The notes under the pieces are model-generated. The model was not told the origin of the DNA. It worked only from the letters and a program-made list of their open reading frames with translations, and searched no databases. 64,000 nucleotides of DNA from NCBI GenBank assembly GCA_047495785.1, contig JBLDXI010000054.1, positions 3,224,001 through 3,288,000 of the forward strand, given 5' to 3'. Source of the DNA: Lepidodermella squamata. Lineage: Eukaryota; Animalia; Gastrotricha. Shown one piece after another: positions 45,251 through 64,000 of this stretch; position 1 is the first letter of the stretch, and the number at the start of each line of letters is the position of its first letter. The translations under genes were made by a program, and so were the position numbers.

Positions 45251-47312
45251 GTTAATATCTCAACCTAACTGGAAAGTTCAAAAATGCTATTAATAGCGAG
45301 AGGCCATGTCTTTACAACCGCTGTATTACAAGACCAACGCATTAACTGTAACAATTTACAAAGAAAGAAGAAACAAAGAGCACAGCCACGCATTTCTGTA
45401 ATAATGCAACGTAGAAATGTAACACACAATGTACTTTGAACCCAAAGACGCAGCACACAACAGCTCACCTGGTGTCAGCGGGTTACTGTTACGCAGCCAA
45501 GTATGAGTTGTAGCGAAACAGAAACGTTATTTTGCAATCGCTTTGTTTTCCCAATGTTGCTCATTCCCAAGTTTCGTGATTAAAAGGTGAATCAAAGCTA
45601 AAGGGCCGAATTGACTTCATCAGTTATAAACGGCAATCATAACGGAATTTTGATTTATTTGCATCTATTGACAAGGCAACGGCAAAATAAATAAAATTCA
45701 ACTGAAACGCTGAGTTGAATATTTGTTATAGATATCTCTACGCGCGCATGATCAGTCGTGATTCTATCAAAATTTCGCCCGTAATCGCGATTTTATCTAT
45801 TATAGTCGTATGTCATACAGACGCGAGGATTGTCACTATAACACAAGGGTTTTCATAGTCTATTTAAGAGTTCAAATTCTGGCGACGTTTCGGACACAAG
45901 CCTTCATCCTCAGGCCGAAACCTTTGAATTCGCAAATCGCGACGCTTTTAAAAATCGATCCCGAGTCTACGTGCGACCTTCAGATGTTACAATTCCTCGG
46001 AATGATAATCGATATTTATTTCTGTTCCGAATAAAAATTCTAGAAATGCTGAGGATCTTGTAACGCTGTAACTATACGCTGTTTACCGAAGGAATAAAAG
46101 AACATTATAAGATGGGCCATTTCTGGTAAAAAGTTGTACCGTTCATTCAGCTTTGTTCAAGCGATCAGCCAACAGCCCGATTGGGTGGCCTAAAGTTATT
46201 ATCATCGCAACAATTGTCCATAGCAAATTCCACTTTCGCAATACTGAATTCGTAATATTGAATCGCAATAAAGAGCAAGACTGTGTAATGTTTACTAGCA
46301 CGCAAAAGCTTTGTCCGATTGTACTTAATCTATAATAGAGCTTTGTTAGACTTTCAGGAACTTCAAACGGAAAGACAATCGACATCTCAGAACCACATCT
46401 CACATGATTCAAGCTACTGCTTCATAATTTGATCATAATCTGATCGAATCCCGCGCGGTACATTTAGGAACAAACAAATCGAAACTTGCAAAATGTATGT
46501 TTTCAAGACACAACATGATCCAGAATGCGCCGATTACTATTGATTTTTTGATCGAACACTAATCGATGAGCGATAGCCAGAGACCCGAGATCACAGCAAT
46601 TGTTGGATATATAGGGACCCAAACGGTTGGTCCATATTGGCAAATAACAGTAGTATTTGTTGCTCATCCTCGACAGGTTTAAACCTGCGACGCATCAGCT
46701 TAGATTTTCTGAAGGCGTAACATATAAGAATTTCTCAAACTGATGCGATTAAATATAAATAAAGATTGCTGGGTAACTATCATAAAATTCTCAGCATATA
46801 CAAAAGGAATCATCATAATCGCAGGATACCATCAACACAACATAATACATGTTAGCGAAAATGAAAGGTTGAATGAAAAATCCCATTTATATAGTTGCAT
46901 GGGATCTAACGAGGCTCAAGTCTGAGTCATATCATTCGTCGAGGAAGGCAATTTCTCTTATGAAGATTCATATACTTCTGCTGTTAACGGTCGCATTACT
47001 TCTGCGCTCGATCCTCTTTTTGCCCATTTATAAATCCATTCCTGAATACATACTGTTACTCTTTTAAAAAATTAAAAATGGTACAATCTGAAGGGAAACA
47101 ATAAAATTATGAATCCGGGAGGGTTGGAACAACCCGAACCGGATGTAAAGCAGGGAAATTTGGTCGGCCGGGGGGAGTTGTAAAATACTAAAAAAAGTTA
47201 TATTATAGAATAAAAAATAATTTTTAATATTAAACATTATTTTAATGTCAAGAACTGGCGCTGATTTCAAAATTGTTTCTGGTTCTTGGCAACAACGCTT
47301 TTCAGCGGCCTA

Positions 47313-50300
47313 TGTACAGCCGTATGATACCGAAGTCAACCGTAAACGACAGCCAAACCCTGATCTGGGTGAAAACTGCCATGGTCATAATTATACGCAT
47401 CATTCACATCATCCATGCATGCATGAGTTCTATTTTATGTTTTTTTCCTAGTTTATTTCCGATGAAGCGACTGCCAGCAACTGTTTTGGTTTTTGTTATT
47501 ATAAGTTTGCTGAGAAACGATTCAACGTGGTATCAAGGAAGACAGAAGGTATTGAGTGAAGCTCTGTATGAACCATGGGGCGATTGGGTTGATGCGGTTG
47601 ATCATTTCGCTGCGAAAGAAGTTTTCCGTAATTGTTTGCGCTGGAGATTTAGCAGATCAACCGTGACTTTTTCTATTTTGGTTTGTGGCGACATCGAGTC
47701 TAATCCAGGGCGTAAGTGCTGTAAGGAGATTTTTTAGTGACACTAGTATTTTTTCTTCAGCAAATAATCAGCGGTCGAATAGTGATCATACTGGTCCTGA
47801 GTTTCGCAAAGTTGTTTCCACACGTACTACACGTACGTTTATACACTTTACTTGTTACTTAGTTTGGATTTAACTAAATGTCTAATACAGAAGCTGCTTC
47901 AATTGGCAAACCTCTGTTTTCAGCTAGTATGGCTAGTCCTTCAAGAATTCCAGTTCAACTGCCATCGAACAGCGGAAAGGCTATTCCTACCGTTAACATA
48001 AGCATGTTTTCGACCCCTCCGAAACTCCCTGTGCGAATCGACCTTGCAAGCCCAGCTGTTTTGGGTGGCAAAAGACAGCTTGATTTTAACAATGGTAGGC
48101 ATGCATTTTATAATTGATACAATTATTCTAATTCTGTGGTTGTTTTGTAGAAGGAGGTAGCCTTGTTGTAAAAAGACCTATGACTTCATCATCCGCAACT
48201 GGACATTCAACGCCGTCTGGGCCTGCTAGAATAGAGGTTATGCCAGAAATGCGCTTGACACCTCTAAAATTGAAAATGGTAGGCTTTAGTGCAAAATAAC
48301 TTGATTTAACATTATTCGGATAGATTGATCAATTGGATGCAAATCGAATCGAAGTCGAAGGCATCGGTGCTTATTTTCACGCCTGTTTTGCCATGAAATT
48401 GTTCGGTTTTGAAACCCTGTCCAAATTTAAAGAGCAGTGCTTTGGAAGAATGGAATTGCTGCATTTATCTGCTTTGCAATCAAAGAGATTGATTGAGCGC
48501 GGCTTGCTAACAGAGAATCAAATAAAGAAAACACCTTTAATGGTGAAAGCCGAAGATGTTGACGCTGAAATAAGTAGGCTATTTACTCCATGGTGCTGCA
48601 TACACATTCGCTATTCACTATTATGTAGGAAAACATCCGCAGTCTTCACAATCTACAGTGACAGGGACAACGACGCCAAAAGCACAGTCAGGCTCTAAGT
48701 CTCAATCACGCAATTTATTTATTGCCGAGGATACACCTTGTTATAGTGAAGATATATACGAGGTCAAGGTAATCAGCTTGAACAATTGGAGAAACGTTTG
48801 AGGGAAAACAAAATTATTCATAGGAAACGGTTCAGCCGGAGGATTTACCCGATGCCGATGTCGATTCAAGCATGCGAGTGTTCGAAGCAATCTCTGATTT
48901 CAAGAAAGAAAATGCAGTCAACAAAATCAAGGACTTCTTCTCGGCGGATAATTTGACTGAAACGGTGTGCGCTGTCTGTCAGGAACTAGTACCAAAACGA
49001 GACATCATTACGAAAATCCTGGAGCAGTCGTTTATCTACAACCGATTGTCTCGATTGCGTTGGGCCGATTCCATTCCTAGCAATGTGCGTCAGGAATACT
49101 GCGCTAAAGATATTGACGAACGATTAGCCGGCCTCGCTTTGAATCCTGCAGGCGTTTCGAACAGTGCAGAAGGAACTTCCATGCAGTTTTGCAAGCATTG
49201 TTACGACTCGCTTTGCTCTTCTAGCATAAAAACGCCGCCTGTGATGGCAATAGCAAATGGATGGGCGTTTGGGAGATTGCCGGAACAATTTTCGTCATTG
49301 TCTTGGGCGGAACGAAAGATGACATCGCTCGTTCAAATTGCTGCGAACATTCAAATAATCGGTCGAAATTTACGCAGACAATTACGTAGCCACACGATTG
49401 CTCTTGTCGCTACACCCGGTCCTGCTGCTACACAAATGCCCATGGCTTTGGAAGATAAAGATTACCTTGTTGTTTTCGCGAATGCTACTGACGATGACAT
49501 GAAGGTAAAATTTGTGAAATTTTGGAGATTTATTTCATATTTGACTTGTATGGTTAGATTGCCAAACAAAAATACGTTCGTGTTCGGCGAGAATTGGTGC
49601 GTGACTTCATGATGTTCTTGAAACAAAACAACAAATCGTTCAAAATGATTCCCATTGATGATGTTGCGCTCAATGCATTACCTGAAGATGATGAAAGGTT
49701 GGATTTGACTACGATTTTGAATGATGGCGAAGAAATCATGGGTGACATCAGCGCAGAATCGATTCGCGTGAATAGCGGTTTAGATGAAGGTGGATTGTTA
49801 GAAACTCATTCTGGTTTATTTGATGTCAACACATCGCAAGGCCGGCAACCTGATGTCGAAAAAGTTGATGAAATCAAAGACGGCGAAAATCTAAAACGTT
49901 TTCGTGTGACATCATCGAACGTCTTCCAAAATGAACGTGACGCCGAATTTTTTATCAAGGCTTTTCCTAATTTGTTTCCGTACGGGGTTGGCTCGCCTTT
50001 ATGCCCACGGCCGGTGCATGTCTCGTTAGAAAAAGCGGTGAAACATTTGATGCGAATAGCCGATCGAAGATTTGCGATAGATGCGAATTTCGTTTTGCTG
50101 GCGTTTGATATGATAGCTCGGAAACGAGCGCACTTGCAGCTGTCTGTGCGATTAAAATGTGATCCGAATATTGCGGCGGAAGCTGTAAGCGTTTCACCCG
50201 AAAATTTTTCTGAACTGCTTCAGTACCAAATTGGGGCCAGAGCTGCAATAAGCCGAAACCAAAAGCCGAGCGATATCCCCGAGTCTCTTCGCTCTGCATC

Positions 50301-53300
50301 ACGTGTCCTCAAGTGTATTGAGAAGGCCGCCGGCAATACATTTGGGAATAAGTTCGAGCGCGAAGAAATGAGGAACCGTGTGTATGGCTACTACGGTCGT
50401 TTTGGCAAACCCCATTTAATGGTCACGGTATCACCTACCGATCACAACAATTGGCTGCTCACATTGTCTGACCCAGATAAGTCAGAAATCGCCGACTCAG
50501 CAATAACCTTAGACGATTTTTATTCTGGGAAATCGTTGCCACCTCTGAACTGGATCCAGAAACATGCAGGATTGGACCCTGTTGCGGCTGCTGCTTATTT
50601 CGACAAGCTGTCCGCATTCATTTTCGGCCCGTTTCTCGGCTGGGATCGTGAAAAAAAGTGTTCCACCCCAGACGGTGGGTATTTCGGCCGAGTACGAGCT
50701 TGGACAGCCGGAATTGAAAGCCAAGGATCGGGAACGCTACACTGGCATGCGTTGTTATGGTTGGATGGGCCTCGTACATCCCTCGAAGAGGCCGAAGATC
50801 CACATTTTGAAACAGCTCTGAAGGATTTCGCTGATTCGGCAACTTCAGCTGAATATCCGATTTTCAAATTTTTTCACAACGGTACCGACGCAGAGGGTCA
50901 TCCGAATTTTATATGTCCTTGTTGCGGAAAAGCTAATTTGTCTATGCGCAAGCTGGAGCTATTTTTAAAGATGAAGAATGCAAATCGTTGCCCCTACTCG
51001 ATAGCTTCGTGCCCTGGCTGTAGCACGAATTTTACGGCTTGTTCTTTGCGTGAAAAGTGTTTCACCGCTCTGACCGAAACTTTTGGTCTTGACCTCACGA
51101 ATTTAAAACCTTCAGTTCGCTTGAGACTGGCAACTCCGCAGCCTTTTCCGCTCCCCGCCACTATCGACGGCGCGACTGTAATTGCATGCAATGAAAAGAT
51201 CATCAGACACCTGTCAGGTGAAAGCTTGGTCGGCTTAATTTCAGAGGAGGAAAGAAAACTCATTTTCGATTCAATTTTCTTGACCGAAGGCATTGCTGCT
51301 GTCCAGGAACATGCATACATGCATTATAGCAGTTGTTTCAAAAAAGGTATTAGTAAATATTTTACAATGACGAAATTGAATTAAATTTTTATGTACCTTA
51401 GGGCCAAAACGAGGAATGAAGCACTGTTACTGCCGTTTTGGAAAGCCCGCAGATCGTACCGCTGAAACTACAATCGGGTCCAATAATACCGCTGGAGTTC
51501 GTATCGATGAAGAGGTCAAGTTAAGGCGAACCCTAGGGTGTGAATGGCTGAATGGATTCTCGTCTGAACTTTTCTCGCTGATTAGATCGAATCACGACAT
51601 ACGACATTTGCGAGGCTGTTCGATTACCTATTCTGTGAAGTATGTGACGAAACCTCAGGAAGATGTCGATTCAAAAGCTGCTATCCAAGCGTACTCCGAA
51701 GGATTGGAGAAATCAATCAAGCGCCGAATAGACAGAGAAACTGAAACCATCCCTGAAGCTCAACGAGGCGCTGGGCGATTGCGCAGTCTCCTGTACAACT
51801 TGACCCACCGGCAAGAGATCTGCACTCCAATGGCAGCACTGTATTTGTTGAGGAACGATATCGCGTTTTACGAGTCCCACGTTTCCAGTCGACTGTACCT
51901 GAACTCAGCCTTGGCTCTTTTGAACAATCGAGACGTTAATGTTAATCTCGAGCGACAAAATGACGGTTCTTTCAAGGGGTACCATGCGATTTCCGATATC
52001 ATATTGCGACCTGAAGAATTTGAAAATTTGTGCTGGTATGATATCACCATGCATTTCGAGAAATGTGCCCTGGGGAAAAATGACGATTGCTACAGATTGC
52101 AACCTGAGCACGCTCAATTCAGAAAAATGGCATATCGTCAACGCGAGCAACCAGCTGTCGTAGTAGTCGTTGGCCCAGGCTTGTTGCCTACCCAAAGAAT
52201 AGAAAACGATAAACAGATGGAAGATTTCGCATTATCCTGTTTACTGATGTTCGTGCCGTTACCCCGAAGCATCGGCGATTTGAAACGCTCTAAAAACACT
52301 TGGACTGAAGCGTGGAGAGACGCCTTAACGTCCGGAGACGTGTCGGATAACGGCCTGAAATATATTAAGTATAATCAAGATCGCTGGGACATGCTGCTTA
52401 AAGGCCAGCAAATGACCGAGGCTTATTATGAACACCTCAAAGAAATGGAGAAGGTAATAATCAAAATTAATCATGTGTAAATTAATATTAAACTTCAAAT
52501 TTTCTGAACTTTCAGAACATGCCAAATCGGAGCGACCTGAATGCTTCAGAAATCGTGGGAGAAAACGAAGAAAATCAAGCTGAATTCGACTATTCCTTTG
52601 AAAGTATGGAAAATGTCGATTCTGAAATCTATTCGGACGCCGACGAAGACAACTGGCTCGCGGATGAAGTTGAAATCGATGGTTCAAATAACACGTCATT
52701 TCTCGCTGATCTAAATTTGCCGAGCCATCTGAGCCACGTTAGCCAGAAAGATTTGGAGAGCGGAATCAAGCAAAAGCCTACCGAAATCGAAAATGGCGAG
52801 TCTCCCGTTGCTTTGAACGATGTATTGCCGAAGCCTGAAGGTAAATACCGGCCATTATCAGTCACTGAAGTGCTTGTTCTGGGCAAATTGGCGCGTGATG
52901 ATTGCTTGTATCAATCAAGCAGTAGCACCTACTGTGACGCACGTAAATCTCAGACCCGAAACCAAATAGACGCTTTTGTCAATGTCCCGGGAAGCCCTGG
53001 CCAGCCTGAAATTCGAATTCCAATTTTTGCGTCTTTAAATGAGATTTCGAAGGCTTTCAACTACACCGAGGATCAGCACAGGGCATTCATCGTACAAGGA
53101 AGAGCTTTTTTACAACGCCTTCTGGATGACGAGGTTGACGATATGTCAATTGAGACTTTGCTTGACCATCAGCAGGTGTTGCTGCTACATGGCCTAGGAG
53201 GCGCTGGGAAATCCACCGTAAGTATCACCTCGATTTATTAACGCTGTAGCAATTTATTTACACCATATAGGTAATCCGCGGATGGCTGGCTCTTGCTGCT

Positions 53301-55222
53301 AGCTGGCAACGACCGGGCTCCATTGCAACAATGGCAGTCTCGGGAGTAGCTGCGATCAATGTTAACGGCTGTACTCTAGCCTCGGCAATTTGCGGATTCG
53401 TCCAGAGCGATTGCAAAAGCATTTCTGATAACATCAGACAACGCTTCGGCGGCCTCAAATTGATCATCATTGACGAACTCTCAATGTTGGGTAATTACTA
53501 TTTTAGTAGCTCAATATTCTTAGGAAGGATTTTTAGACGGACAAATAAATGATGGAATCGACTCTATGTTAAATTTTAATTAAGTAGATTATTAAAAAGT
53601 GCGCTAGTTTTAATTTTTTTCATGTCATATTAATACAGCTCAAAATCAGCTCGAAGCTCTTGAAAAGTGGATACAAGAAGTGTTTGACGACAAGAGGAAA
53701 GGCAATTTTTTCGGCTGTGCCAATGTTGTTCTTGCTGGCGACTTCTTCCAACTACCCCCTGTCAATGGGTCCCTATTATATTCTGAAAAAGGCCAATCTG
53801 AGGGTTTCCGATGCTATCGAACGATCACTCAAAACACTGTGTTGCTCACGAAAAATCTCCGTACTGACGCTCCTGATTACGCAGCCTTACAGGAGAAAAT
53901 ACGCCAGGGCTTGTGGGATGACGAAATTTGGAACCTTCTACGCGACCGAATTGGAAAAATCCCCGATGGAGACGGGTTTTGTCCGAAAATAGTCACCCAA
54001 AATGAAACACGGCATCGATTGGCGAAACAACATCTTCGTTCAGTTTGTCTTGAGTTGGCCGAAAAAGGCGAGAAAGAACCAATTATGCTCGAAGCTGATT
54101 TCAAAATCTCTTCCGATAAGGCAGAACCGCTCTCCAAACATGAAATTGATTTCTTGAAAACACTGGGCGATGAGAAATTGGAGAGAATTCAAACATTCCT
54201 GCCGTTGTACTTGGGTGCCAATGTGCTAATTTCAACGAGCCTTAACGTTCCGATGGGTATTTTTATCCGATATCCGTTACTTAAGACTTTAAGACTTAAG
54301 ACATACTTTAAGCGAAACCAAATTATTTTTCAATTTTTAGTATAAGAAAGCGTGATTGTCCTTGAAAATTCATTCGATTATTTCGGTTTTAGGAATTGTG
54401 ATTACGTATATCCGATAAACCATAAATTTGATATGAAATTCTAAAAGGATTTTTTAAATTTCAGCATGATAACAATTTTTGTCCTGTTCAAACTGTTCTT
54501 TAAATGAATCATCCTTGAATTATTTAGGTTTGGCGAACGGCACAAGGGGACGAATTGTTGGTTGGAAGTTTCCCGAAAATACGCAATACGTTATTGTAAT
54601 ATTTCATACATCCCGAAATGTTTAATTATTTTTCCTAAATTTCAGCGAGAATTTGAAGGAATGCGATTCCGTATTCCGATCGATCCGTCAACTAAGAAGC
54701 GCGCAACCATTGAATATGTCTTAGTGGAACTCGCGTCGGGGAAGTTGAGGTATAAGCCGCCGAACCAACCCCCAGGCCTTCCCGATAACGTTATTGCGTT
54801 GCCTCCAATGCAACATAAATTGCGAAATCGGGTTAAAATCGCGAACAGCAAGCACAACCAACGGAAAACCGTTTCCATCACCATTACGGCCGTTCAGCTG
54901 AGGCAAGCAGATGTAATGACCACTCACTGCACGCAAGGTTTAATGTTGTGATAATTTTATTTAGCCAAGTCAACATCTCGTGTCTTCAGGTTGCCAATTT
55001 GATCGGTATATTATTGCCGAAACGTCCCCAAGGCATTTTTACGTCCAAATTTCACGCGGAAAGCAGGGCCTGAGCAGCATCGGCATCATCGACCTCCCAG
55101 AGTCTCTCATGAGTCTATGCAAGCCGTGCCCGGCACTATGCAAGGAAATGGAACGTTTAAGTGTGCTTCATCGTATCACCAAGTCACGCTACGACTTCGC
55201 CTTTCCTTCACAGCCTTCGTAA
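47313..55222 (+). CDS. Helitron Rep-PIF1 helicase polyprotein with an N-terminal leader and 2A-like motif; about 13 introns; exact start codon uncertain
   Basis: Manual splicing keeps one open frame from 'GDIESNPG|P' through Rep motifs (LMVTVSP; ESQGSGTLHWH; YSVKYVTK) and PIF1 motifs (GLGGAGKST, IIIDELSM, GDFFQLPPV, GLANGT, THCTQG, YVQISRG) to TAA at 55222. Confidence 0.88.
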
Positions 55223-55663
55223 TTATGAGCCATTATTACGTCTTTAGTTGATTAGCAATAAAACTTCTCCATTGGAACTTGGACGTAAAGGTGGTTGTAA
55301 ACAATTTTAGCAATTTTCGTTCAACATTTCACTGACTAATGAAATCCGATATTCTAAGGAGTAGCTAGTTGTTTGACATTTCCAACGTGCTCTCCTATGA
55401 ATTTCCGATTACTCTGTCAGGCTGCTTCACGCCCATTTGTAATTCAATTGTTGCGCAATACTACGCGCCAAAACGTCGCGTGCTTTAAAAAGTAAATCTG
55501 CCACCATTTTACCGCCTTTTTGGCTACTTAAACCTCCCTTCTGTGGTCATCAACATCATTCACAGCTTTCTCAACATTTTCGTGTACTATTGTTCTTCAT
55601 TATTATCCTATTATTATTCCTTGTTATTATTCTTATCGTTTTTTAATCTCATTTCAATCTGAC

Positions 55664-56766
55664 ATGTCTCGTGGTCGCGGAATAAAACACGGGCTCAATC
55701 TTAATGAGATGTCGGAGGGCGAACGCCCTGAATCGAGGGCAAGGATCGATTCACCCAGTAATTTTTACTGCAATTAGTTAATTCTGGTGACTCGTATTTT
55801 TCCAGATTTGATAAACGAGGATTCGGTCGACTATGACTTCGATCTAACTGACGTCATGTCGACAACGCCAGTTAAGCCGCTCTCGCTCTGGACATTGACA
55901 ACGCCAGTCCATGACGCCGCAGTGATAATTCGAGTCGCTAGCTCCAGCGGCATTGCGTAATTTTAATTTCTACGCTTGAGTTTTTTATACCTAGTTATTT
56001 GTTCCTAGTCACTACTCCAACGGCGCAATGGTCACCTTCGTCATTTACGACGGCAAGGACAACCGGAAGCTCAAATGCACCACGCAAGCTGAGCTGATAG
56101 CCGGCAAGCTGCTCTTCAACAGAACTTTCAAAATTTTCGGCTTCAAGGCCGAAAAGGTGAGAAATTTCTTGACATTATATAATTTGCCATTCATTCATCA
56201 ATTCTTTACCGGTCATTTAATTTAATCTATTTCCCAACAGGACACCGACCCAGTTTTCGGGGCAACAAGTTTCAGAGCTGAATCTTCGTTCACAGCAGTG
56301 CCCGTCGACGATATCCTCGTTCCTCAGCTGACGTGGAACGTTATTTCGCCGACGGATTTTGCGGCTATTCAGCTCAACGAAACCAGGCGCTTCACTGACC
56401 TGCTTGGTTTCGTCAGCCAAGAAGAAGCGCCAGCGCCTGTAACGCCTACAAAAAGCGGCATCGTATGTATTTTTATTACTCCTGGTTTTTTTTTAATTTT
56501 CTATTTTTCAGAATCGTCCGTTGACAAAAATGGACTTCACGCTGAAGCTTTCTCCTCTCGTCAGCGTGAAGATGTGCGTATGGGAGGACCAAATTCCTGC
56601 CCTCAAACGAGCAACCAAGCCGAAAATTGTAGCGTTCAAGCATGCTACGATTCAGCGCTCAGAGCGTTTCGGCCTTCAGGTTTCCTGCACAAGGAACCTG
56701 CAAGTAAATCCCGACTTCGAAGAGGCCATGGTCCTTCGCCGCCAACTTGTACCAATGCGAAAATAA
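55664..56766 (+). CDS. Helitron-encoded RPA70-like ssDNA-binding protein with two OB folds, 5 exons
   Basis: The spliced product has 'IIRVASSSGIAHYSNGAMVTFVIYD', 'FTDLLGFV', 'VKMCVW', 'IVAFKHATI' and 'VNPDFEEAMVLR', which resemble RPA70 DBD-A/B (…NPDIPEAYKLR). Confidence 0.72.
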
Positions 56767-57906
56767 CACTGTTTTTACTCATTTTGATCATTCTTTTTTT
56801 CATCATCTCATTTCATTTCATTACATCAGTTTTATTGTGAAACTTATCAATTGAAGTACAACTTTTTCTTTACTGCTCATTCAACAAACTTTAACAATAA
56901 AACGCGTCTGAGTGTCAATTCAACCCAACTTTTATTATTTCCGGAAGCCAGTAGAAGCTAATTTTTTTGCTAACTTTAGCAACACTTAGTTGGAGCTTGA
57001 ATGGCGAACAACAGCATATCTTTGTGGGCAATTTTCCGTAACAATCCTGATTGATTGATGATAGGCTAGATACAAATATATGTATTAGTGAGTAGTCATC
57101 CCAATTGTATGACGCAATAGAAGCTAATAAGGACGCACGTCTCAAGTAATCATAAATCAAAACTAAAGTTCTGGCGCTGAAATAAATGATGTTGCGAAGC
57201 ACGCAAGAGACACAAACATAAAATTAACAAGCTAAGAGCAAGATAAAGCAGCAGCTGTAACCTTATTTTCAATTATTGATAGAGTCAGGCCGATCCCTTC
57301 ATTCGTAAGCTGACTAGCTCGAAAGCCCTGGTCATCGAATCGGATTCGGTCATCGGTGACAGGTTTTAACTTATCAACCTAAGCCCTGTTAAATCACCAT
57401 GTTTGGTGTCAGGGTCTAACATCCACCCATCCATCGTATTTTCTTGTAGATATTTTTGGTACACCACAAGAACTAATAGAAGCATCTCAATCCACGAATG
57501 CTAATAGTTATTCAGTTATTAACCTTCCCTAACGTTACCTCCGAGCGCCACGGCCCCAACCAACTTCCAACCCTCCCGGATTGTGGCTGTGCGACAGCCA
57601 CTGCAGTGATGATGAGTTTGATCATTTAGAACTAGAGTCACACAATGGAGTTGGAAAAAGTAGAAAATTAGTTACAAATTATTGAGTTACGTCGCTAATA
57701 AAATTCAGTATTGAAAAAAGAGAGGCATATACTTCAAGGTAGCGATTGCGGGGACGGCGTAGTCGCTACTAAAGATAATACTCTACAAACAAGCAGTGAG
57801 CAGCATGTAGTTAGTGGCTCCTGCTTATTATCTGCAACGCAAACATACAGCGGCTCGATTTTTTTCCTCTCAGACCACAAACAGCTGAGACCTGAGACGT
57901 GTGAAA

Positions 57907-60900
57907 ATGAATCCGGGAGGGTTGGAACAACCCGAACCGGATGTAAAGCAGGGAAATTTGGTCGGCCGGGGGGAGTTGTAAAATACTAAAAAAAGTTATA
58001 TTATAGAATAAAAAATAATTTTTAATATTAAACATTATTTTAATGTCAAGAACTGGCGCTGATTTCAAAATTGTTTCTGGTTCTTGGCAACAACGCTTTT
58101 CAGCGGCCTATGTACAGCCGTATGATACCGAAGTCAACCGTAAACGACAGCCAAACCCTGATCTGGGTGAAAACTGCCATGGTCATAATTATACGCATCA
58201 TTCACATCATCCATGCATGCATGAGTTCTATTTTATGTTTTTTTCCTAGTTTATTTCCGATGAAGCGACTGCCAGCAACTGTTTTGGTTTTTGTTATTAT
58301 AAGTTTGCTGAGAAACGATTCAACGTGGTATCAAGGAAGACAGAAGGTATTGAGTGAAGCTCTGTATGAACCATGGGGCGATTGGGTTGATGCGGTTGAT
58401 CATTTCGCTGCGAAAGAAGTTTTCCGTAATTGTTTGCGCTGGAGATTTAGCAGATCAACCGTGACTTTTTCTATTTTGGTTTGTGGCGACATCGAGTCTA
58501 ATCCAGGGCGTAAGTGCTGTAAGGAGATTTTTTAGTGACACTAGTATTTTTTCTTCAGCAAATAATCAGCGGTCGAATAGTGATCATACTGGTCCTGAGT
58601 TTCGCAAAGTTGTTTCCACACGTACTACACGTACGTTTATACACTTTACTTGTTACTTAGTTTGGATTTAACTAAATGTCTAATACAGAAGCTGCTTCAA
58701 TTGGCAAACCTCTGTTTTCAGCTAGTATGGCTAGTCCTTCAAGAATTCCAGTTCAACTGCCATCGAACAGCGGAAAGGCTATTCCTACCGTTAACATAAG
58801 CATGTTTTCGACCCCTCCGAAACTCCCTGTGCGAATCGACCTTGCAAGCCCAGCTGTTTTGGGTGGCAAAAGACAGCTTGATTTTAACAATGGTAGGCAT
58901 GCATTTTATAATTGATACAATTATTCTAATTCTGTGGTTGTTTTGTAGAAGGAGGTAGCCTTGTTGTAAAAAGACCTATGACTTCATCATCCGCAACTGG
59001 ACATTCAACGCCGTCTGGGCCTGCTAGAATAGAGGTTATGCCAGAAATGCGCTTGACACCTCTAAAATTGAAAATGGTAGGCTTTAGTGCAAAATAACTT
59101 GATTTAACATTATTCGGATAGATTGATCAATTGGATGCAAATCGAATCGAAGTCGAAGGCATCGGTGCTTATTTTCACGCCTGTTTTGCCATGAAATTGT
59201 TCGGTTTTGAAACCCTGTCCAAATTTAAAGAGCAGTGCTTTGGAAGAATGGAATTGCTGCATTTATCTGCTTTGCAATCAAAGAGATTGATTGAGCGCGG
59301 CTTGCTAACAGAGAATCAAATAAAGAAAACACCTTTAATGGTGAAAGCCGAAGATGTTGACGCTGAAATAAGTAGGCTATTTACTCCATGGTGCTGCATA
59401 CACATTCGCTATTCACTATTATGTAGGAAAACATCCGCAGTCTTCACAATCTACAGTGACAGGGACAACGACGCCAAAAGCACAGTCAGGCTCTAAGTCT
59501 CAATCACGCAATTTATTTATTGCCGAGGATACACCTTGTTATAGTGAAGATATATACGAGGTCAAGGTAATCAGCTTGAACAATTGGAGAAACGTTTGAG
59601 GGAAAACAAAATTATTCATAGGAAACGGTTCAGCCGGAGGATTTACCCGATGCCGATGTCGATTCAAGCATGCGAGTGTTCGAAGCAATCTCTGATTTCA
59701 AGAAAGAAAATGCAGTCAACAAAATCAAGGACTTCTTCTCGGCGGATAATTTGACTGAAACGGTGTGCGCTGTCTGTCAGGAACTAGTACCAAAACGAGA
59801 CATCATTACGAAAATCCTGGAGCAGTCGTTTATCTACAACCGATTGTCTCGATTGCGTTGGGCCGATTCCATTCCTAGCAATGTGCGTCAGGAATACTGC
59901 GCTAAAGATATTGACGAACGATTAGCCGGCCTCGCTTTGAATCCTGCAGGCGTTTCGAACAGTGCAGAAGGAACTTCCATGCAGTTTTGCAAGCATTGTT
60001 ACGACTCGCTTTGCTCTTCTAGCATAAAAACGCCGCCTGTGATGGCAATAGCAAATGGATGGGCGTTTGGGAGATTGCCGGAACAATTTTCGTCATTGTC
60101 TTGGGCGGAACGAAAGATGACATCGCTCGTTCAAATTGCTGCGAACATTCAAATAATCGGTCGAAATTTACGCAGACAATTACGTAGCCACACGATTGCT
60201 CTTGTCGCTACACCCGGTCCTGCTGCTACACAAATGCCCATGGCTTTGGAAGATAAAGATTACCTTGTTGTTTTCGCGAATGCTACTGACGATGACATGA
60301 AGGTAAAATTTGTGAAATTTTGGAGATTTATTTCATATTTGACTTGTATGGTTAGATTGCCAAACAAAAATACGTTCGTGTTCGGCGAGAATTGGTGCGT
60401 GACTTCATGATGTTCTTGAAACAAAACAACAAATCGTTCAAAATGATTCCCATTGATGATGTTGCGCTCAATGCATTACCTGAAGATGATGAAAGGTTGG
60501 ATTTGACTACGATTTTGAATGATGGCGAAGAAATCATGGGTGACATCAGCGCAGAATCGATTCGCGTGAATAGCGGTTTAGATGAAGGTGGATTGTTAGA
60601 AACTCATTCTGGTTTATTTGATGTCAACACATCGCAAGGCCGGCAACCTGATGTCGAAAAAGTTGATGAAATCAAAGACGGCGAAAATCTAAAACGTTTT
60701 CGTGTGACATCATCGAACGTCTTCCAAAATGAACGTGACGCCGAATTTTTTATCAAGGCTTTTCCTAATTTGTTTCCGTACGGGGTTGGCTCGCCTTTAT
60801 GCCCACGGCCGGTGCATGTCTCGTTAGAAAAAGCGGTGAAACATTTGATGCGAATAGCCGATCGAAGATTTGCGATAGATGCGAATTTCGTTTTGCTGGC

Positions 60901-63900
60901 GTTTGATATGATAGCTCGGAAACGAGCGCACTTGCAGCTGTCTGTGCGATTAAAATGTGATCCGAATATTGCGGCGGAAGCTGTAAGCGTTTCACCCGAA
61001 AATTTTTCTGAACTGCTTCAGTACCAAATTGGGGCCAGAGCTGCAATAAGCCGAAACCAAAAGCCGAGCGATATCCCCGAGTCTCTTCGCTCTGCATCAC
61101 GTGTCCTCAAGTGTATTGAGAAGGCCGCCGGCAATACATTTGGGAATAAGTTCGAGCGCGAAGAAATGAGGAACCGTGTGTATGGCTACTACGGTCGTTT
61201 TGGCAAACCCCATTTAATGGTCACGGTATCACCTACCGATCACAACAATTGGCTGCTCACATTGTCTGACCCAGATAAGTCAGAAATCGCCGACTCAGCA
61301 ATAACCTTAGACGATTTTTATTCTGGGAAATCGTTGCCACCTCTGAACTGGATCCAGAAACATGCAGGATTGGACCCTGTTGCGGCTGCTGCTTATTTCG
61401 ACAAGCTGTCCGCATTCATTTTCGGCCCGTTTCTCGGCTGGGATCGTGAAAAAAAGTGTTCCACCCCAGACGGTGGGTATTTCGGCCGAGTACGAGCTTG
61501 GACAGCCGGAATTGAAAGCCAAGGATCGGGAACGCTACACTGGCATGCGTTGTTATGGTTGGATGGGCCTCGTACATCCCTCGAAGAGGCCGAAGATCCA
61601 CATTTTGAAACAGCTCTGAAGGATTTCGCTGATTCGGCAACTTCAGCTGAATATCCGATTTTCAAATTTTTTCACAACGGTACCGACGCAGAGGGTCATC
61701 CGAATTTTATATGTCCTTGTTGCGGAAAAGCTAATTTGTCTATGCGCAAGCTGGAGCTATTTTTAAAGATGAAGAATGCAAATCGTTGCCCCTACTCGAT
61801 AGCTTCGTGCCCTGGCTGTAGCACGAATTTTACGGCTTGTTCTTTGCGTGAAAAGTGTTTCACCGCTCTGACCGAAACTTTTGGTCTTGACCTCACGAAT
61901 TTAAAACCTTCAGTTCGCTTGAGACTGGCAACTCCGCAGCCTTTTCCGCTCCCCGCCACTATCGACGGCGCGACTGTAATTGCATGCAATGAAAAGATCA
62001 TCAGACACCTGTCAGGTGAAAGCTTGGTCGGCTTAATTTCAGAGGAGGAAAGAAAACTCATTTTCGATTCAATTTTCTTGACCGAAGGCATTGCTGCTGT
62101 CCAGGAACATGCATACATGCATTATAGCAGTTGTTTCAAAAAAGGTATTAGTAAATATTTTACAATGACGAAATTGAATTAAATTTTTATGTACCTTAGG
62201 GCCAAAACGAGGAATGAAGCACTGTTACTGCCGTTTTGGAAAGCCCGCAGATCGTACCGCTGAAACTACAATCGGGTCCAATAATACCGCTGGAGTTCGT
62301 ATCGATGAAGAGGTCAAGTTAAGGCGAACCCTAGGGTGTGAATGGCTGAATGGATTCTCGTCTGAACTTTTCTCGCTGATTAGATCGAATCACGACATAC
62401 GACATTTGCGAGGCTGTTCGATTACCTATTCTGTGAAGTATGTGACGAAACCTCAGGAAGATGTCGATTCAAAAGCTGCTATCCAAGCGTACTCCGAAGG
62501 ATTGGAGAAATCAATCAAGCGCCGAATAGACAGAGAAACTGAAACCATCCCTGAAGCTCAACGAGGCGCTGGGCGATTGCGCAGTCTCCTGTACAACTTG
62601 ACCCACCGGCAAGAGATCTGCACTCCAATGGCAGCACTGTATTTGTTGAGGAACGATATCGCGTTTTACGAGTCCCACGTTTCCAGTCGACTGTACCTGA
62701 ACTCAGCCTTGGCTCTTTTGAACAATCGAGACGTTAATGTTAATCTCGAGCGACAAAATGACGGTTCTTTCAAGGGGTACCATGCGATTTCCGATATCAT
62801 ATTGCGACCTGAAGAATTTGAAAATTTGTGCTGGTATGATATCACCATGCATTTCGAGAAATGTGCCCTGGGGAAAAATGACGATTGCTACAGATTGCAA
62901 CCTGAGCACGCTCAATTCAGAAAAATGGCATATCGTCAACGCGAGCAACCAGCTGTCGTAGTAGTCGTTGGCCCAGGCTTGTTGCCTACCCAAAGAATAG
63001 AAAACGATAAACAGATGGAAGATTTCGCATTATCCTGTTTACTGATGTTCGTGCCGTTACCCCGAAGCATCGGCGATTTGAAACGCTCTAAAAACACTTG
63101 GACTGAAGCGTGGAGAGACGCCTTAACGTCCGGAGACGTGTCGGATAACGGCCTGAAATATATTAAGTATAATCAAGATCGCTGGGACATGCTGCTTAAA
63201 GGCCAGCAAATGACCGAGGCTTATTATGAACACCTCAAAGAAATGGAGAAGGTAATAATCAAAATTAATCATGTGTAAATTAATATTAAACTTCAAATTT
63301 TCTGAACTTTCAGAACATGCCAAATCGGAGCGACCTGAATGCTTCAGAAATCGTGGGAGAAAACGAAGAAAATCAAGCTGAATTCGACTATTCCTTTGAA
63401 AGTATGGAAAATGTCGATTCTGAAATCTATTCGGACGCCGACGAAGACAACTGGCTCGCGGATGAAGTTGAAATCGATGGTTCAAATAACACGTCATTTC
63501 TCGCTGATCTAAATTTGCCGAGCCATCTGAGCCACGTTAGCCAGAAAGATTTGGAGAGCGGAATCAAGCAAAAGCCTACCGAAATCGAAAATGGCGAGTC
63601 TCCCGTTGCTTTGAACGATGTATTGCCGAAGCCTGAAGGTAAATACCGGCCATTATCAGTCACTGAAGTGCTTGTTCTGGGCAAATTGGCGCGTGATGAT
63701 TGCTTGTATCAATCAAGCAGTAGCACCTACTGTGACGCACGTAAATCTCAGACCCGAAACCAAATAGACGCTTTTGTCAATGTCCCGGGAAGCCCTGGCC
63801 AGCCTGAAATTCGAATTCCAATTTTTGCGTCTTTAAATGAGATTTCGAAGGCTTTCAACTACACCGAGGATCAGCACAGGGCATTCATCGTACAAGGAAG

Positions 63901-64000
63901 AGCTTTTTTACAACGCCTTCTGGATGACGAGGTTGACGATATGTCAATTGAGACTTTGCTTGACCATCAGCAGGTGTTGCTGCTACATGGCCTAGGAGGC
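57907..64000 (+). mobile_element. Second, head-to-tail copy of the same Helitron2-type element, truncated by the window end
   Basis: Sequence and every ORF translation repeat copy 1 at a constant offset of 10798 bp. Confidence 0.92.
58111..64000 (+). CDS. Helitron Rep-helicase polyprotein with 2A-like leader, copy 2, partial
   Basis: ORFs 58071, 59670, 60392 and 62214 translate identically to 47273, 48872, 49594 and 51416. Confidence 0.86.

Follow-up and report, generated by a model that had tools for sequence, protein, structure and literature searches.

A 2A/StopGo motif predicted to be completed by splicing at the head of a Helitron2-type Rep-helicase gene in Lepidodermella squamata

Results

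The leader exon and the split motif

The DNA analysed (the window) is a stretch of 64,000 nt from the gastrotrich Lepidodermella squamata, positions 3,224,001 to 3,288,000 on the forward strand of contig JBLDXI010000054.1 (contig 54) of assembly GCA_047495785.1. It carries a Helitron-like transposable element with a gene for a Rep-helicase protein (RepHel), followed by a second copy of the same element that runs out of the window. At the head of the RepHel gene lies a sequence which would become a complete 2A/StopGo motif once a short intron was removed. Such motifs, at which the ribosome skips a peptide bond, have been described in RNA viruses, in retrotransposons and in a small number of host genes.

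By direct reading, the frame that begins at the putative start codon ATG 47462 is open through 47711, giving 83 codons and one additional C. The predicted leader peptide starts with MKRLPATVLVFVIISLL and ends with ...RSTVTFSILVCGDIESNPG, and the 3' tract of this exon, FSILVCGDIESNPG followed by C, is encoded by TTT TCT ATT TTG GTT TGT GGC GAC ATC GAG TCT AAT CCA GGG C. Directly behind the C stands the donor GTAAGT, and an acceptor with a 12-nt pyrimidine tract, TTTTTTCTTCAG, would close a phase-1 intron of 49 nt (intron 1). As exon 2 opens with CA AAT AAT, splicing would join C (47711) to CA (47761-47762) and form CCA, the codon of Pro84. The predicted spliced product therefore reads SILVCGDIESNPG-P, i.e. 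GDIESNPG-P, a classical 2A core. In the genomic sequence the codon after GDIESNPG (47687-47710) encodes R, and the proline is obtained only through the predicted splice. The unspliced open reading frame (ORF), 47273..47737, reads ...NPGRKCCKEIF and terminates at an in-frame TAG (47735-47737) inside intron 1.

After the predicted splice, the sequence conforms to the class A 2A consensus, D(V/I)ExNPG followed by P. Class A 2As call for some 10-20 hydrophobic or helical residues of LLxxxG type before the core, and STVTFSILVCG is suitable as far as sequence can tell; in the predicted gene model the frame continues from the proline for 2,146 further codons. The ILVCG before the core resembles LLKCGDIESNPGP (LLKCG) of a retrotransposon 2A in the same genome, where the upstream tracts of other 2As are LLKCG, LLLMTAG and LLLAN. 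The 24-nt motif has two exact occurrences in the window (47687-47710 and 58485-58508) and none in 100 shuffles. The leader is composed of a hydrophobic segment at residues 3-18, with a Kyte-Doolittle maximum of 3.12 over 11 residues, a spacer of about 50 residues, and the 2A at residues 66-84.

A candidate additional 5' exon was spotted post hoc. From an ATG at 47245, an 85-nt intron with a GTGAAA donor at 47367 and a strong acceptor, TTTTTTTCCTAG, ending at 47451 could lead in frame into the leader. All differences from the contig-9 copy of the element in its 5' 353 nt (3 substitutions and a 1-nt deletion) lie within this candidate intron.

The RepHel gene model

The intron lengths of the host were estimated from 15 high-scoring ORF-to-ORF junctions in the window, all of 49-62 nt; one of them, in an EIPR1-like gene, is also 49 nt long (GTGAGC...TTTTTGTAG). 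A histogram of GTRAGT-to-acceptor distances gave no information, due to the degenerate host donors. The RepHel gene was modelled by dynamic programming from ATG 47462 with a prior for host-like intron lengths, and the helicase end was corrected by hand from the PIF1 motifs. The resulting model divides 2,230 codons among 15 exons, with 14 introns between them, and its stop codon is TAA at 55220-55222. The introns measure, in order, 49, 58, 56, 45, 55, 55, 53, 55, 62, 53, 148, 271, 56 and 52 nt, and those of 45, 148 and 271 nt fall outside the host-like class. By codon usage the frame of the model was the best of the three in each of exons 1-7. The Pfam matches to DUF6570, Helitron_like_N and PIF1 are all on the plus strand.

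These results agree with most of what the original prediction, made from the letters of the window, had claimed. Removal of the intron does complete a D(V/I)ExNPGP motif after a hydrophobic run, the unspliced reading does give NPG-R and a stop at 47737, and the first introns proposed then were recovered by the model, with the frame staying open into Rep and helicase as had been followed by hand. The motif was also correctly placed in a second copy, which repeats the element at an offset of 10,798 nt. The leader had been called hydrophobic, and a hydrophobic head is indeed present, for which a targeting role is conceivable. The gene had been assigned to a Helitron-like RepHel; the assignment stands and can be narrowed as described next, and the 2A exon belongs to the element.

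Identity of the element

Comparison of three copies delimited a unit in which the leader exon lies 353 nt inside the element in every copy. The predicted protein combines a Rep domain with an HUH motif and a tyrosine motif with an SF1B PIF1-like helicase, and DUF6570 is present in exon 7. The terminal inverted repeats of the element are short, and a stem-loop follows the right one. Together with DUF6570, these two features are the hallmarks stated for HLE2 elements (PMC11417382). The C-terminal APE endonuclease of Helentrons was not found: there was no Exo_endo_phos match in the pieces scanned, and the helicase is followed at once by the end of the ORF, at 55222. Because the HLE2 hallmarks occur here without an endonuclease domain, the element was assigned to the Helitron2 variant of HLE2. 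The nearest clusters in feature space are Helitron_like_N families, commonest in rotifers and oomycetes.

HLE2 elements are expected to insert between T and T. At the insertion sites of the three copies the bases just before the 5' end are T, A and T, the last base of the element is T, and the 3' flanks begin with G, T and T; the ends are ambiguous by one base. The 3' 2.3 kb of the element holds short ORFs only, one of which was checked and had no Pfam match. On its sequence, the element is interpreted as a Helitron2-type (HLE2) rolling-circle transposon, autonomous and recently mobile.

Copies and coding constraint

The window was extended from the genome and a third copy was added from contig 9. 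Self-comparison showed that 47109-53202 is identical to 57907-64000, and in the extended sequence copies 1 and 2 are 100% identical over their full length and in the same orientation. The contig-9 copy is 99.2% identical, with 61 substitutions and 5 indels, and carries a 120-nt tandem duplication of about 47283-47402. In a DNA run, the variant sites at 47384, 47391, 47417 and 47440 had a depth of 119.6 for the contig-54 form and of 64.7 for the contig-9 form. This ratio of 2:1 indicates that the identical pair is not an assembly artefact and that there are three real copies; nor is the pair a segmental duplication, since the flanks are unrelated. The identical adjacent pair suggests a very recent, possibly local, re-insertion.

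A comparison of the contig-54 and contig-9 copies gave 18 substitutions across 6,693 nt of coding sequence and 16 across 1,068 nt of intron, a 5.6-fold lower rate in exons. Among the coding changes, 11 are synonymous and 7 nonsynonymous (pN/pS = 0.18, binomial p = 0.0005). In the 322 nt of exons 1-2 there is not a single substitution, where the intron rate would predict about 4.8, and their sole indel, of +3 nt, is in frame. The element has accordingly been selected for its protein and has moved very recently. With identical copies and a constrained coding sequence, it looks currently active. The features of the locus are listed in Table 1.

Table 1. Features of the element and its second copy in the window
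Feature	Position	Strand	Basis
Coding exon 1: 83-codon leader and first base (C) of the Pro codon	47462..47711	+	Open frame; best codon-usage score of three frames; 0 substitutions against the contig-9 copy
Hydrophobic head of the leader, RLPATVLVFVIISLLR, possibly signal- or anchor-like	47468..47515	+	Hydropathy calculation
2A/StopGo tract VTFSILVCGDIESNPG and C	47663..47711	+	Sequence; core matches viral 2A
Intron 1 (predicted), 49 nt, phase 1, GTAAGT...TTTTTTCTTCAG	47712..47760	+	Splice predicted; length within the host class of 49-62 nt
Candidate rival donor GTAAGG, same phase, giving a 40-nt intron and NPG-RKC-S, no 2A	47721..47726	+	Shorter than every confident host intron
Exon 2: CA completes Pro84, then NNQRSNSDHTGPEFRKVVSTRTT	47761..47832	+	Contig-9 copy has an in-frame +3 nt insertion after 47781
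Intron 2 (predicted), 58 nt, GTACGT...AATACAG; contains ATG 47878, a rival start codon	47833..47890	+	Gene model
Exons 3-7: S/T/P-rich linker, a further domain without assignment, DUF6570 (PF20209)	47891-48094, 48151-48278, 48324-48573, 48629-48768, 48824-49504	+	Gene model; DUF6570 35.2 bits
Exon 8: Rep (Helitron_like_N; HUH as HWH)	49558..51346	+	Pfam 47.6 bits; Atlas neighbours all Helitron_like_N clusters
Exons 9-15: YSVKYVTK tyrosine motif, Walker A GGAGKST, Walker B IIIDELS, PIF1-like helicase, stop TAA	51402-52453, 52516-53217, 53271-53490, 53639-54256, 54528-54589, 54646-54937, 54990-55222	+	Translations; PIF1 26.4 bits
Helitron2-type (HLE2) element, copy 1, 10,499 bp	47109..57607	+	Three-copy comparison: identity from 47108/47109 to 57607, flanks unrelated
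Left terminal inverted repeat, 18 nt, AATCCGGGAGGGTTGGAA	47112..47129	+	Perfect reverse complement of 57565-57582
Right terminal inverted repeat	57565..57582	+	Perfect pair of 47112-47129
3' hairpin, 8-bp stem, 3-nt loop, then tail TGCAGT	57583..57601	+	DNA fold -8.6 kcal/mol, z = -2.1
Unique spacer between the copies, 299 bp	57608..57906	.	Copy comparison
Copy 2, 100% identical, reaching 68405 (extended coordinates) beyond the window	57907..64000	+	Self-comparison
Copy 2 leader exon 58260-58509 (motif 58485-58508) and intron 1 58510-58558	58260..58558	+	Motif match, 10,798-nt offset

2A motifs elsewhere in the genome

The pattern D[VI/M]ExNPG was found at 18 sites across the compact 121-Mb genome, against 0 for a reversed-pattern control. 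Thirteen of these sites are in non-long-terminal-repeat (non-LTR) retrotransposons, with P directly next and long ORFs, three are the Helitron copies, and the remaining two, which lack both the hydrophobic tract and an open frame downstream, are chance matches. From this breakdown the motif is essentially diagnostic of 2A in this genome. The 13 unsplit D[VI]ExNPGP sites are on contigs 2, 7, 10, 11, 15, 32, 33, 42, 48, 55, 60 and 64 and belong to at least five retrotransposon families. PHD-like cysteines and Exo_endo_phos characterise one family; in another, which is R2/RLE-like, RVT_1 comes after C2H2 fingers and the part seen lacks an APE domain. Their leaders carry from one to about six membrane-like hydrophobic segments before the 2A, and the hydrophobic head of the Helitron leader fits this local theme.

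Motifs split by an intron were also sought. The pattern YAG/[VI]ExNPGP, where the slash marks the acceptor boundary, occurs at six loci with differing nucleotide sequences, the control giving 0 and about 0.2 being expected by chance (C, contig: C1:4939548, C4:1030186, C9:3393278(-), C16:415167, C28:109309 and C29:3638077). The last of these, locus L068, was the one read. Here an exon ending in ...MKATLLLRSGD is followed by the donor GTGAGT, a 53-nt intron ending in TTTTAG, and then VESNPGP, and the downstream frame of at least 407 codons has Tnp_P_element and TNP-like RNase H domains, as in a P-element-type transposase. Thus, splice-assembled 2As appear to recur in this genome, which makes the predicted splice in the Helitron more credible. 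The split patterns NP/GT and N/GT were at control level genome-wide, and none of the five NP/GT matches read had a 2A context. A second site with ExNPG and C before GT, on contig 41, reads LERESNPGR and was rejected as a chance match.

A five-copy family with the sequence TTCAG/TCG GGC AAT GTT GAG ATG AAT CCC GGT CC, i.e. SGNVEMNPGP with N for D, apparently lies just after an acceptor (C3:918598, C4:473480, C4:524940, C24:4672344 and C42:1017009).

Four other Helitron-like families were located in the genome (C9:1.104-1.120 Mb, C46:0.59 Mb, C4:0.396 Mb and C29:1.966 Mb). One of them has an intron-less frame of 2,403 codons, and in the contig-4 copy the next ORF has a ubiquitin-hydrolase-like GNTCYINASLQ motif.

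Relatives of the element

Two short degraded Rep fragments (C1:4.804 Mb and C31:1.823 Mb), 39-53% identical to the Rep of the element and lacking a leader, are the only other traces of its family in the genome. A protein-homologue search with the Rep exon returned nothing even at E = 1e-3, evidently because the word prefilter misses diverged kin; a metagenome scan was likewise empty, and the searches outside this genome brought up no relative of the element. For the exon 1-exon 2 junction, the genome contains no processed copy that lacks the intron. One DNA run covers the element, and it contains no joints.

Discussion

Proposed mechanism

The following sequence of events is proposed. The first exon of the RepHel gene would encode a leader of at least 83 residues, in which the hydrophobic head and the spacer precede the tract FSILVCGDIESNPG. 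Removal of the phase-1 intron would supply the obligatory proline codon, and because the splice creates this codon, StopGo is expected at Gly83-Pro84: on the spliced mRNA the ribosome would fail to form this bond, release the leader and continue with a RepHel of about 2,147 residues that has proline as its first residue. On an unspliced mRNA, translation would meet the TAG of the intron after 91 codons, and no RepHel would be made. The leader may be a membrane-seeking peptide that is kept off a nuclear enzyme in this way, or the arrangement may throttle the yield of transposase. The splice-assembled 2A of the Helitron is probably real, and that it operates ahead of RepHel is the reading we favour, with some reserve.

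Several points weigh against it. A second donor, GTAAGG at 47721, has the same phase and its use would abolish the 2A. The ATG at 47878, which lies within the putative intron 2, shares the frame of exon 3 and could serve as the start of a leader-less RepHel, and several ATGs lie upstream of 47462. Searches of sequencing runs, made with the element and with a neighbouring single-exon gene for a thiamine pyrophosphate (TPP) enzyme, gave no RNA run containing the element; three possibly-RNA runs had the neighbouring host gene and no contig on the element, which is not evidence of silence. The 83-residue leader had no homologue among 1.84 billion representative proteins apart from one spurious repetitive match, no usable match in the ESM Atlas and no homologue elsewhere in the genome, and its conservation is consequently known only among copies that differ by 0.8% or less. 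The four other Helitron families had no NPG in their large open frames, which were the parts examined. Finally, signal sequences N-terminal to a 2A can inhibit the reaction in some artificial polyproteins (PMC2978324).

Alternative explanations

The lack of a homologue for the leader and the in-frame ATG at 47878 could be explained by an origin of the leader outside the RepHel gene. In that case it would be a separate short ORF or upstream ORF, possibly the captured 5' module of a 2A gene, with NPG as a relic and RepHel starting downstream, e.g. at ATG 47878. Helitrons are known to capture host gene fragments, and the absence of a 2A from the four other families examined is in line with this. 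However, a relic should have kept CCN after GGG; instead, a consensus donor stands exactly one base past the codon for Gly, with CA provided by the acceptor. The frame needed is open in exon 2 and the sole indel between copies in this region is in frame, no source gene for the leader was found in this genome, and split 2As head other transposases here. This explanation is considered unlikely, although it survives best among the alternatives.

Nearly the same standing, slightly lower, is given to the second alternative, in which the gene is structured as modelled and the motif has no present function, either because the element is not expressed or because the tract fails to act in the host ribosomes. 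No transcript was found, and many eukaryotic 2A-like sequences skip weakly or not at all (PMC3708506; PMC13405545). On the other side, the two identical copies and the third at 99.2%, supported by the read depth, the low pN/pS and the intact Rep and helicase motifs speak for an element in use, and the core is identical to that of highly active viral 2As.

The third alternative concerns the donor. If the leader were spliced to RepHel from 47721, the 40-nt intron would give ...NPG-RKC-SNNQ..., with no StopGo and a hydrophobic leader fused to the enzyme; in a variant of this, both donors would be used and the 2A would be an alternative-splicing switch. GTAAGG is an acceptable donor and was picked by a length-agnostic gene model. 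Yet 40 nt is shorter than all confident host introns and than all other introns of the gene (at least 45 nt), GTAAGT is closer to the donor consensus, and the use of 47721 would leave a perfect 2A tract without a role. We regard this as less probable again than the two preceding explanations.

A chance juxtaposition of an NPG-ending ORF with GT-AG signals is very improbable: although the genome has two chance D[VM]ExNPG sites and GT-AG pairs are abundant, the reversed control gave no match, and the hydrophobic tract, the perfect donor, the completion of Pro (about 1 in 16) and the long open frame would all have to coincide.

Comparison with known 2A systems

With the viral class A 2As, such as those found in foot-and-mouth disease virus, Thosea asigna virus and the cypo- and iflaviruses, the Helitron motif has in common the core, a similar upstream tract and the skipping expected between Gly and Pro. 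GDIESNPGP counts among the classical viral 2A cores, with about 99% activity in cypo- and iflaviruses (PMC8623073). In contrast, the viral sequences are contiguous in unspliced RNA genomes and lie between polyprotein domains, whereas that of the Helitron is split by a nuclear intron and heads a single enzyme. The virus-like polyprotein of the original prediction was an overstatement, as the gene follows in its layout the N-terminal 2A leaders carried by non-LTR retrotransposons and P-type transposases of this genome, not a viral polyprotein. In sum, its observation is confirmed and its interpretation partly supported.

N-terminal 2A-like sequences have been described in APE-type non-LTR retrotransposons (L1Tc/Ingi, CR1, Crack, Rex1 and L2; Odon et al. 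2013, PMC3708506). There, as in the Helitron, D(V/I)ExNPGP stands near the N-terminus of the enzyme and parts a leader, short or without known function, from the catalytic protein. Unlike them, the Helitron has no reverse transcriptase or endonuclease, its motif is interrupted by an intron and would be present only in the spliced mRNA, and what lies downstream is DUF6570, Rep and helicase instead of APE and reverse-transcriptase domains.

In sea-urchin NOD-like receptors (NLRs), a 2A-like sequence serves as an N-terminal signal sequence (Roulston et al. 2016, PMC4981915). Both cases pair a 2A with a hydrophobic element at the N-terminus, and in principle leader-fused, membrane-directed and leader-free, cytosolic fates could follow. 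The difference is that the 2A-like peptide of the receptors, located right at the N-terminus in a host immune gene, is itself the signal sequence, while in the transposon gene the hydrophobic head is separate, about 50 residues upstream of the 2A (residues 3-18 against 66-84).

The closest parallel in this genome is L068, in which a predicted splicing-completed 2A likewise heads the transposase of a DNA transposon and the intron is host-sized. The split there is between D and V in phase 0 and not between G and P in phase 1, and the transposase family and the leader are unrelated. The Helitron is on this account an independent case, and these differences point to independent acquisitions or independent intron positions.

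The Helitron itself resembles other HLE2/Helitron2 elements (Thomas & Pritham; Bao & Jurka; HELIANO, PMC11417382) in its short terminal inverted repeats, its stem-loop, the combination of DUF6570, Rep and PIF1-like helicase and the lack of an endonuclease, and differs from them by the 2A leader, which is reported for no described HLE. The literature searched, recent 2A surveys included, contained no 2A of a Helitron or a DNA transposase, full-text searching having turned up only biotechnology papers or work without a connection, and the surveys did not deal with Helitrons, helicases or introns; within this literature, the original statement that 2A is not a standard Helitron feature is borne out. 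By sequence criteria the motif is, after the predicted splice, a class A 2A in an HLE2/Helitron2 element, outside the retrotransposon and NLR signal-sequence groups.

Implications

Newer surveys (PMC12338488 and PMC13405545) add LINE ORF1p and ORF2p, a Ty3-like element, RapGEF, death-domain and ankyrin proteins to the eukaryotic 2A carriers, and note that eukaryotic 2As cluster near N-termini, with unclear function; what N-terminal 2A leaders do for mobile elements is left open there. Within the literature searched, the predicted use of a 2A at the head of a DNA-transposon gene, finished by splicing, would be a new form of a known mechanism. If this is true, StopGo would extend to class II elements through a 2A that heads a rolling-circle transposase and is completed only by intron removal, and protein-based motif searches would miss intron-split 2As. 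The Helitron, the P-type transposases and the retrotransposons of one genome would also provide a natural system for studying the function of N-terminal 2A leaders.

A broader and more tentative idea, which we put forward as a possibility of limited likelihood, is that a hydrophobic leader with a 2A is a shared head for enzymes of unrelated classes of transposable elements. These would be the APE-type and the zinc-finger/reverse-transcriptase non-LTR retrotransposons, the P-element-type transposons and Helitron2, with assembly by splicing in the DNA transposons at two intron positions. If so, StopGo would be a general device that transposons have recruited convergently for their expression. 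It might serve to dose the enzyme, to couple its synthesis to correct splicing, or to co-produce a membrane peptide that has its own function.

Additional observations

The host domain content, which is that of an animal, includes a nuclear receptor, GBP, IgGFc-binding/SUEL lectin and CFP1. Chance ELNPGP matches brought up tRNA-like T-arm strings, GGGAATTGAACCCGGGACC, which occur in dozens of identical copies spaced at about 4.5 kb (C10:2.43-2.73 Mb, C48:3-26 kb, C68:20-50 kb and C31:1.86 Mb) and indicate large tandem arrays with a tRNA gene.

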